A stretch of DNA of 64,000 bases from Saccostrea cucullata (taxonomy: Eukaryota). The notes below the pieces were generated by a model that was not told where the DNA came from, ran no database searches, and saw only the letters and a list, made by a program, of their open reading frames with translations. Shown here in pieces: positions 27,423-28,957 of this stretch; position 1 is the first letter of the stretch; each line of letters opens with the position of its first letter. Made by a program: the position numbers and the translations under genes. The stretch is taken from positions 124,001 to 188,000 of the forward strand of contig NW_026925288.1 of the NCBI RefSeq assembly GCF_032062105.1, written 5' to 3'.

Positions 27423-28957
27423 TCACAGAGAATGATACCAAGCTAAAGAGTTCGAAATAGATGTAAAGTCAATTCTCTTGAGAAAGCTTTTGGTAGAGTT
27501 ATCCTTTTTGGCATCTCTTTTCAGTAAATGGGTAACGGCCAACCAAACAACTGAAACCTTTATCATCTCCAATGGTGGAGATTCATTCTGGTTCAGCCAT
27601 TCTGGGAATAAAATACACATCTGTACAATATCTGCAGCAACTTTCGGACTCGGTCTAAGATTAGGATCCTTCTTCAGTAACTGCTTTGTCAGCTTTACTA
27701 TTGGTTTTGGTACTGCCGCTGGAAGAGGTGGTAAGCTTTCCTCTTTGTATGAACTACTATTGAAAGGGCCTTTGTAAAAAGGATTTTCTTCTCCAAATAT
27801 CTCATACACTAATGTTCCAGCAGTCCAAATGTCTGACTTTCTGTAGTCAAGCCAAGCATTCCGTCCGGGTTCCATTGTTGCTATCTCGGGGGACATTAAC
27901 GCAGCATTCCCCCCTTTGTCAATGTTACTGGTGTTGTATGGGATCATTAGTCCATAATCCGGTTCAGCTAAACAACAACCAAAATCACTTATCACCAGTT
28001 GTGGATACCCACTGGAGACATCTACCAGAATGTTATCACTTTTCAAGTCTCTATGTGCTATGCCATGTTCTGTCATGTGTGCAATTCCTTCCAATAACTG
28101 GGCTAGCAGAGAGCACCTCATATTCAAGTTGACGTCATTTTCTGAAAGGAAGCTCTTCAAAGTCATGTCATATTTCTTCATCACCAAGAAGAGGGTTTTG
28201 TTTCTCCCATGTCCACCGTCTGGATTTAACCTTGTTGGAAGGGCCGCAGGGTACCTTTCATCATCACTCTCGATCTTTGGAATGTCGTCAATGAAGATGC
28301 CTTGCATGTCCACAATGTTTGGGTGAGGAGGAAGACTTTTGAGTTTCACTCGATTTCTGGTCAGCCAAATAGACTTTTCCTCCTGTTGTTGCAAAAACCT
28401 TGCAGGGATCATTTCCTTCATCATTCCCCTAAATATGACATCAGCATTGGATTCAAAATCATAATTGAACATCATTTTAATGGCCAGGTCATATTTTTCC
28501 TCTTTTTGAAAAAGTGGTTTCTCATTAGATTCTTTGATAGTAGTGGTAGAAATATCTGGATCGTTTCCCTTTAAATGAAAATCAGGTTCCTCGGGTATAA
28601 TTTCAGTGTCATCATCGGACTCATTTATGACTTCGAAACTTGATTCTGTGTCGGTTAACTCATCTGTTTCATCTGTTTTATAGGATTGCTCATCAGGTAT
28701 GTAGCTTCTAATCTCTTCATTCTTGAACCTTGCTTCATACACAGCAGCATTACAACCTTGCCCAATCAACTGTCCTATTTGGAAGTCTGTGAATGCTGCA
28801 GCAGAGAAATTATTCTCCTCTTGAGATGCAGGATTCGTTTTCACGGAGAATACGTTTCGAATAGAGCTTGTGATTTCATCATCTTCTTTGACAACAGCTG
28901 TTGACAACTTAGCAACCACAAAGGAGAAGATGGGTCGGCGATTCCGTGAATCCATTG
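27423..28957 (-). CDS. PINK1: PINK1-A exon 2 (TM segment, whole kinase domain, C-terminal extension)
   Basis: 510-aa ORF; acceptor AG at 28959-28958. Confidence 0.95.

Follow-up and report, generated by a model that had tools for sequence, protein, structure and literature searches.

We analyzed a 64,000-nucleotide stretch of the genome of the oyster Saccostrea cucullata (contig NW_026925288.1, positions 124,001 to 188,000; hereafter the window) that carries two PINK1 genes in tandem, both on the minus strand and with two coding exons each (Table 1). The focus of our analyses was insertion 1, a loop of the PINK1 kinase domain, and a short motif inside it which an initial annotation of the same DNA had likened to an LC3-interacting region (LIR), proposing that this PINK1 may bind ATG8 proteins directly and act as its own mitophagy receptor. 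The motif proved to be strongly conserved among oysters and is probably a docking site, as judged from its sequence, although its consensus points to several possible partners.

The two PINK1 genes

Exon 2 of copy A holds an open reading frame (ORF) of 510 residues (27423-28955) with an in-frame ATG at 28955, and in the homologue search it matched the S. cucullata NCBI Pink1-like protein P0001 at 100%. We infer the start of this exon, 28957, from an AG acceptor and a split codon, and the lower bound of exon 1, 45390, from the residue count. Exon 2 of copy B is 91% identical to that of copy A. The annotated proteins P0001 (609 residues) and P0002 (615 residues), from which the full-length residue numbering used here is taken, are both named 'Pink1, mitochondrial-like'. 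Copies A and B each have a Pfam Pkinase match (E 2e-22), and in a search of solved structures they score best with the PINK1 chains of Pediculus, Tribolium and human (E 1e-96 to 1e-80), followed by another kinase family at 1e-12. Both comprise a kinase most like PINK1, in whose ORF the catalytic motifs HRDLKSDN and DFG can be read, together with an N-terminal exon, which in both copies encodes a putative mitochondrial targeting region, and a C-terminal extension. The C-terminal helices of P0001 were modeled by AlphaFold2, from a 68-sequence alignment, with a predicted local distance difference test score (pLDDT) >90. In their kinase fold, HRD and DFG motifs, C-terminal extension and N-terminal targeting exon the oyster proteins resemble insect and vertebrate PINK1, and insertion 1 is at the same site in all of them, flanked by the strand with VYEA and that with the LAIK lysine.

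Table 1. Positions of the PINK1 exons and of the elements of insertion 1 in the window.
Feature	Position	Strand	Description
PINK1 copy A, exon 2	27423..28957	-	Membrane-anchor region, kinase domain with insertions, C-terminal extension
PINK1 copy A, exon 1	45390..45684	-	Putative N-terminal targeting region, P0001 residues 1-98; P0001 peptide words map here
PINK1 copy B, exon 2	57028..58580	-	ORF 57028-58578, 516 residues; P0002, mapped from residue 101
PINK1 copy B, exon 1	59422..59716	-	Putative N-terminal targeting region
Insertion 1, copy A	28488..28730	-	81 residues, about 1/3 acidic, predicted disordered
Insertion 1, copy B	58093..58350	-	86 residues
Block TDTESSFEVINESDDD, copy A	28608..28655	-	16 residues
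Block TDTESSFEVINESDDD, copy B	58228..58275	-	Same 16 residues
Core motif S-F-E-V-I-N-E-S, copy A	28617..28640	-	All but the sixth position invariant in 8 oyster-family PINK1
Second motif DDDTEII, copy A	28596..28616	-	Weakened, I to T at first hydrophobic position
Second motif DDDIEII, copy B	58216..58236	-	h-x-h-h form with acidic flank

The two copies are real paralogues, since their synonymous divergence (dS) is 0.165, they can be aligned with each other only at exon blocks (27345-29217 with 56949-58845 at 90.5%, and 45385-45809 with 59417-59834 at 83%) and their introns differ twenty-fold in length, that of copy A being ~16.4 kb with an N gap included and that of copy B ~0.8 kb. The same three observations rule out a haplotig or other assembly artefact as the source of the two copies. 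In a tree of the kinase domain, from which the loop was left out, copies A and B are sisters with a support of 99, and the tandem duplication is specific to S. cucullata, having taken place after the split from S. echinata. The branch of copy A is 3.6-fold longer than that of copy B in this tree. Inside the long copy A intron, and again in the DNA that separates the two genes, we observed inverted repeats with 96-98% identity (40065-40735 and 43862-44286 versus 48598-49691). They probably represent a mobile element in several copies, which may account for the expansion of the copy A intron.

Insertion 1 and its identical block

Measuring the spacing from VYEA to LAIK gave the lengths that had been claimed, 81 residues for copy A and 86 for copy B. 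Insertion 1 varies greatly in length between animals, being 42-47 residues in the PINK1 of bat, bird, lizard and fish (42-52 across vertebrates and amphioxus) and ~14-37 in Pediculus, hymenopteran, beetle and dragonfly PINK1, whereas it reaches ~240 residues in gastropods. The description of the oyster loop as mostly acidic was an overstatement, as in copy A 26 of its residues are D or E (~1/3) and 15 are S or T (~1/5). The loop does differ heavily between the copies, with 60 of 86 positions identical, 21 replacements and a 5-residue indel, versus 408 of 430 identical positions in the rest of the protein. Within this divergent loop the 16-residue block TDTESSFEVINESDDD is identical in both copies, its codons differing by two synonymous changes (ACC/ACA and TCC/TCT) and no replacement changes. 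Consistent with this, the ratio of non-synonymous (dN) to synonymous divergence between the copies was 0.16 for the kinase, 0.63 for the loop once the block is excluded and 0 for the block itself, where dN is 0 over 39 non-synonymous sites compared to 0.155 per site in the remaining loop. However, because the probability of a 16-residue identical run within the loop was 0.043 by column permutation of copies A and B, the comparison of the paralogues on its own is marginal evidence and only suggestive of conservation.

Much stronger evidence came from other oysters. We compared eight oyster-family PINK1 sequences, namely both S. cucullata copies, those of S. echinata and Magallana gigas, and four more sequences that lie within the oyster-family clade. 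Only 11 of the 126 columns in their loop alignment are invariant, and seven of those 11 form S-F-E-V-I-x-E-S, with two more directly after it, a clustering with a probability of 0.0002. It is this cross-species test, and not that of the paralogues, on which the case for the block rests. The expectation that the block would prove to be a conserved island was thus borne out, the motif being invariant in all eight sequences in a loop that is otherwise scarcely alignable, and this in spite of whole proteins that are ~61-69% identical to copy A. Sites of the CK2 type (TDTE, SSFE and SDDD) are found near the motif.

The neighboring second motif, said by the initial annotation to resemble acidic-hydrophobic motifs of the FIP200-binding or SIM type and to differ between the copies, does differ, and DDDIEII of copy B fits the definition of a SUMO-interacting motif (SIM), whereas in copy A T-E-I-I fails it. 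DDDIEII is kept after FEVI in S. echinata and two other oyster-family sequences, a third has DDFEMI, and the counterpart in Magallana gigas is degenerate (DYDVE). A TRAF6-type pattern, P-x-E-x-x-F, after the second motif (PEEPDF in copy A and PEESNF in copy B) was considered and dropped, as S. echinata has PGSPDF. We also observed a divergent, truncated, Magallana-like PINK1-like sequence of 444 residues in assemblies from sequencing runs (P0028), which has SFEDI in place of the motif (V to D) and alterations at several otherwise invariant kinase residues; it may represent a paralogue in decay or a variant produced by the assembly.

Predicted disorder and expression of the loop

AlphaFold2 placed residues 183-249 of P0001 in coil with a pLDDT <50 (~40), with the kinase well folded. 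Based on the coil and low pLDDT of these residues, the motif is predicted to lie in a disordered loop that does not pack on the kinase fold.

Expression was assessed with oligo-dT RNA-seq of a related Saccostrea lineage that has fixed differences from both copies. The reads cover exon 2 at ~190x, the motif included, with no joint within the exon; their depth ends at ~28947, where a loose end continues into exon 1. The motif is therefore transcribed and not spliced out, and the loop is retained in mature mRNA, a finding which is read from the related lineage and is not specific to either copy. Within the block there was one best-supported RNA difference, and it is synonymous. In contrast, reads failed to align at a hypervariable part of the loop (28459-28580, with loose ends at 28495, 28504 and 28541), with both the motif and the kinase sides covered. 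The read alignments therefore also delineate a conserved island surrounded by hypervariable flanks.

A family of related motifs across animals

The oyster motif is one member of an array with the consensus D-S-D-[I/F]-x-[I/V]-[L/I]-S-E-D-D. Among the named sequences this array occupies insertion 1 in the molluscs, nemerteans and annelid, and it does so too in most of the sequences related to them. To count its members we used a strict pattern of two residues from D/E/S/T followed by Theta-x-[V/I/L]-[I/L/V], Theta being the first hydrophobic position. In 43 non-redundant, non-insect loops there were 91 instances of this pattern compared to 11.8 +/- 3.4 in composition-preserving shuffles, an excess of about eight-fold. 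At least one strict instance is present in 41 of the 43 non-insect loops and in none of 27 short loops of the insect type, and the motif was not found in insertion 1 of vertebrates and amphioxus. Those 41 loops, whose named carriers are molluscs, nemerteans and an annelid, have between one and eight copies of [D/S][D/S]-[I/F]-x-[I/V]-[L/I]-acidic. The position profile of the array is D-x-D-S-D-[I57/F25]-x-[I/V]-[L/I]-S-E-D-D-D, and 66 of the 91 strict instances have an aliphatic residue at the first hydrophobic position. The residue before that position varies with it, being D in 51 and S in 11 cases when it is aliphatic, and S in 14 and D in 11 when it is aromatic.

Scallops have DSDIVIL and DDDLVIL, heterodont clams SDITVL and DSDIVII, and unionids ESIDIISD alternating with DSDIIVID in up to ~8 copies. 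Among gastropods, Haliotis has four of the form SDSD[F/I/M][S/T]IL, with DSDITILE also seen, and caenogastropods have DDDISIISED and DSDIFILAGD. Mussels have ESFSVI, ESFSFIES and ECDKWSF[I/V]. Outside molluscs, the nemertean Lineus has DDSFEVIPESEED, whose core is the same as the oyster SFEVI.ES, the nemertean Tubulanus has three DSF[V/I][V/I]L, and the annelid Owenia has DDSFVILDDEES. Conservation in other bivalves, which had been set in advance as the check that could refute the LIR-like reading, was therefore found in part. F-x-V-I is present in oysters, where the F is invariant, and in mussels, and it recurs in nemerteans and Owenia; scallops, heterodont clams and unionids, however, have I or V in place of the aromatic residue, as do most gastropods, and motifs such as DSDIVIL, SDITVL and ESIDIISD are not canonical LIRs.

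Further sequences fall on the tree near the molluscs, nemerteans and annelid or as a sister group to insects. Two of the latter, P0073 and P0075, have a loop of 70-75 residues with a single TESSIE[I/V]LSSEED. On the strength of these two sequences the array may be older than the divergence of arthropods from the mollusc-annelid-nemertean lineage, in which case it would have been lost in insects. A second conserved element was observed a few residues downstream of the motif: ES-L-P-P-x-D-F in the clade of P0241-P0244, P0068 and P0081, A-P-x-E-F in the heterodont clams P0036, P0038, P0039, P0042 and P0047, and L-E-S-L-P-D-L-E-D in the gastropods P0045-P0066. Its presence suggests that the motif and the downstream element may together make a bipartite site.

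Fit of the motif to known docking classes

Four known classes of docking motif share the grammar seen here, namely LIRs, FIP200-interacting regions (FIRs), SIMs and PP2A-B56 sites, and they cannot be told apart by sequence alone. All four patterns are enriched in the 43 loops, SIM the most (z 13.8, 113 observed versus 30.7 expected), followed by FIR (z 6.8), B56 (z 6.3, 42 versus 17.1) and LIR (z 5.2).

The resemblance of the oyster motif to a LIR was confirmed, as both copies have T-E-S-S-F-E-V-I, in which acidic or phosphorylatable residues precede F-x-x-I. The residues around it have the low pLDDT and coil prediction expected of the accessible, disordered context of a LIR. In its F-E-V-I core, upstream acidic and serine residues and disordered surroundings, the oyster motif is comparable to canonical LIRs of the FUNDC1 and FKBP8 types, from which most other molluscan PINK1 motifs differ by having no defining aromatic residue.

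The FIR core is psi-Theta-x-x-Gamma, where psi is D/E/pS/pT, Theta is I/L/V/F/Y/W and Gamma is L/I/V (PMC7946963). Both the oyster S-F-E-V-I and the variants found across the family agree with it, and as psi is S in the oyster motif, phosphorylation would be needed there, as at S177 of optineurin. The likeness extends to individual motifs: FIR2 of CCPG1, D-pS-D-I-V-T-L-E, is near-identical to DSDITILE of Haliotis and SDITVL of clams, and S177-F178 in the LIR/FIR of optineurin is paralleled by the oyster SF after acidic residues. In addition, the preference for S before an aromatic and D before an aliphatic first position resembles the two FIR modes. There are also differences, as FIRs are located in cargo receptors and the PINK1 motif in a kinase loop, and the third position of the PINK1 motif is nearly always I or V, which the FIR definition does not demand.

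A SIM is defined as h-x-h-h or h-h-x-h with h as I/V/L and an acidic or phosphoserine flank (PMC8616421). The oyster F-E-V-I fails this definition in its strict form because F is at h1, whereas the family consensus fits it; indeed, because its first position is aliphatic, the consensus fits the SIM and FIR patterns better than that of a canonical LIR. The h-x-h-h cores, the acidic and serine flanks on both sides and the tandem repetition are all similar to the phospho-regulated SIMs of the PML, Daxx and PIAS types and to multi-SIM arrays. The motifs depart from SIMs in that oysters, mussels and nemerteans use F or W as the first core residue, and in that the host protein is a cytosol-facing mitochondrial kinase.

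The docking pattern for PP2A-B56 is [L/F/M]-x-x-I-x-E with an acidic tail. F-E-V-I-N-E-S-D-D-D, in which the E is invariant in oysters, agrees with this LxxIxE pattern as a pattern match alone.

A complex prediction was also made for residues 186-232 of P0001 with GABARAP. As the oyster's own GABARAP gene is split into exons, P0209 was used as a proxy, this being the only complete GABARAP from a search with a 69-residue open frame around the central GABARAP exon of the oyster, and 97% identical to that frame. The scores of 0.29 and 0.28, both under the mark of 0.34, were obtained with a proxy protein and no controls, and count neither way.

A putative docking site for the autophagy-initiation machinery

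In our view the motif very probably has a genuine function. It is short, conserved, modular and repeated, has acidic and serine flanks, is rich in beta-branched residues and is situated in a loop for which disorder is predicted; for these reasons it is probably a conserved docking motif that would bind by beta-strand addition and be tuned by phosphorylation. What we infer from these properties is how the motif binds, its regulation by phosphorylation and its partner. As to the partner, we tentatively propose the autophagy-initiation machinery, in the form of the Claw domain of FIP200 and/or ATG8, because this single class of ligand would explain both the aromatic and the aliphatic variants and suits the place of PINK1 in its pathway. 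Binding of ATG8 by the oyster motif itself is possible. Insertion 1 faces the cytosol on damaged mitochondria, and in such a mechanism S-F-E-V-I-x-E-S with its acidic and CK2-type S/T flanks would there bind the partner by adding a short beta-strand, with phosphorylation of the flanking serines tuning the interaction. PINK1 that has accumulated there would help to recruit the phagophore directly, beside the ordinary Parkin/ubiquitin route. The original proposal of PINK1 as an ATG8-binding protein thus stands in part: the motif is real, conserved and LIR-fitting in oysters, but the consensus of its family points at least equally to FIP200 or SUMO.

Several observations weigh against FIP200 or ATG8 as the partner. 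When instances are anchored on positions 1 and 4 alone, 66% of them have I/V/L at the third position of the motif, compared to a background of 18%, and this is the h-x-h-h signature of SIMs, which is asked for by neither the LIR nor the FIR definition. Of the class patterns, moreover, it is that of SIMs which has the greatest enrichment, and poly-SUMO binders typically have tandem arrays. Acidic-hydrophobic patterns are in addition degenerate and overlap each other, with PP2A-B56 fitting as well. We list here too that an exon-wise search of the oyster genome for the FIP200 Claw (PF10377) had no match, although its controls had none either and it is hence uninformative.

The same observations lend themselves to other explanations, the first of which involves SUMO. 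Possibly, insertion 1 is a multi-SIM array regulated by CK2 phosphorylation, which would bind SUMO, singly or in chains, on proteins of mitochondria or of the pathway. The signaling or stability of PINK1 would then be linked with sumoylation instead of ATG8. The consensus of the family, D-S-D-I-x-[I/V]-[L/I]-S-E-D-D, is that of a textbook SIM with acidic and phosphoserine flanks (PMC8616421), and the leading enrichment of the SIM pattern, the predominance of aliphatic residues at the first position, the exact fit of DDDIEII in copy B and the tandem copies (up to ~8 in unionids and four in Haliotis) are all consistent with such an array. However, the invariant motif of oysters starts with F and mussels also have W in ECDKWSF[I/V], both of which are outside I/V/L, and our literature search found no link between PINK1 and SIMs, so that we regard this explanation as possible but somewhat doubtful. 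A role as a PP2A-B56 docking site, by which the phosphatase would reverse PINK1 autophosphorylation or nearby phosphorylations, appears very improbable. In its favor, F-E-V-I-x-E is present in all eight oyster-family sequences with the E at its sixth position invariant and the fifth the sole variable one, and the B56 pattern is enriched in the 43 loops, which we take as no more than a lead. Against this, for most of the family the sixth position is D or something else, or the fourth is not I, the enrichment may simply reflect the acidic flank, and the literature we found has no biological precedent for it.

The motif could also act inside PINK1 or its complex, with no outside partner of the beta-grasp kind, as a strand packed on the N-lobe, at the dimer interface or in contact with the TOM complex, or the acidic loop as a whole could tune import or activation. 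A 2026 preprint puts insertion 1 of Tribolium near the dimer interface, in low-resolution models, and the statement that the role of insertion 1 is essentially unknown (PMC8616241) leaves room for such functions. Nevertheless, we consider an intramolecular role unlikely, as AlphaFold2 modeled no packing and a pLDDT of ~40 across the whole loop, which leaves a structural role of the motif in the kinase fold unsupported, and a copy number ranging from 1 to ~8 with free spacing is the behavior of a modular docking motif and not of a structural element. Finally, the motif might have no specific function, the identity of copies A and B being due to recent ancestry and chance, and the hydrophobic clusters to an acidic, low-complexity loop. 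The marginal result of the paralogue test is compatible with that explanation, but we disfavor it as highly unlikely in view of the invariance of the motif over oyster-family lineages whose proteins have diverged considerably, its excess over composition-matched shuffles and the recurrence of SFEVI.ES in Lineus.

Other features of the window

Besides the PINK1 genes, the window contains a single-exon ORF of 656 residues (5562-7532, minus strand) with RING, B-box and NHL-repeat matches, which is a gene of the TRIM-NHL type, and an ORF of 429 residues (62171-63460, plus strand) with a cadherin domain (E 4e-17) that probably belongs, as a single exon, to a large cadherin or protocadherin gene. 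Directly downstream of copy B there is an open frame (55668-56333, minus strand) of about three tandem units of ~70 residues (KIHEFFENLLLCSWVLNK...); its Pfam matches are weak and limited to sub-stretches, and it is probably a tandem DNA repeat and not a gene.

Implications for PINK1 biology

The docking to FIP200 or ATG8 that we favor has to be considered in the context of the mitophagy pathway of oysters. An exon for the Parkin RING0 domain (FYVYCKKC...PGKLRV) is present in the oyster genome (L008; contig C23110, 120-344, minus strand), and therefore the PINK1-Parkin pair is probably complete. In Crassostrea gigas, optineurin, p62, NIX and FUNDC1 with LIRs have been reported, with no mention of a LIR in PINK1 (PMC9163569). 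As both Parkin and receptors with LIRs exist in oysters, a receptor-independent route is unnecessary and would be an addition at most; such a route via PINK1 is speculation. A more far-reaching version, in which the PINK1 of molluscs, nemerteans and annelids would be a multivalent initiator of mitophagy whose phospho-tunable FIR/LIR-type array directly recruits the FIP200/ULK complex and ATG8-coated membranes to mitochondria with accumulated PINK1, bypassing or supplementing Parkin, ubiquitin and soluble receptors, seems to us rather unlikely.

In the literature on PINK1 with LIRs, SIMs or insertion 1, the motif and array were not described, although journal coverage was partial and this absence is not proof; nor did the literature we found include ATG8 binding by PINK1 through insertion 1. 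Our results therefore describe a well-known kinase with a previously undescribed, lineage-wide array of docking motifs. The usual models, insects and mammals, have a short insertion 1 without the motif. Its conserved and repeated occurrence in molluscs, nemerteans and an annelid gives insertion 1 a function that can be tested. PINK1 is a disease kinase, these lineages are far from the usual models, and the relevance of the array to human PINK1 biology is indirect. The array represents a natural experiment on how a sensor of damage is wired to downstream machinery, be it SUMO, a phosphatase or the initiation of autophagy. With FIP200 or ATG8 as the partner, the kinase would double as a mitophagy receptor, and with SUMO the motif would connect PINK1 with sumoylation.

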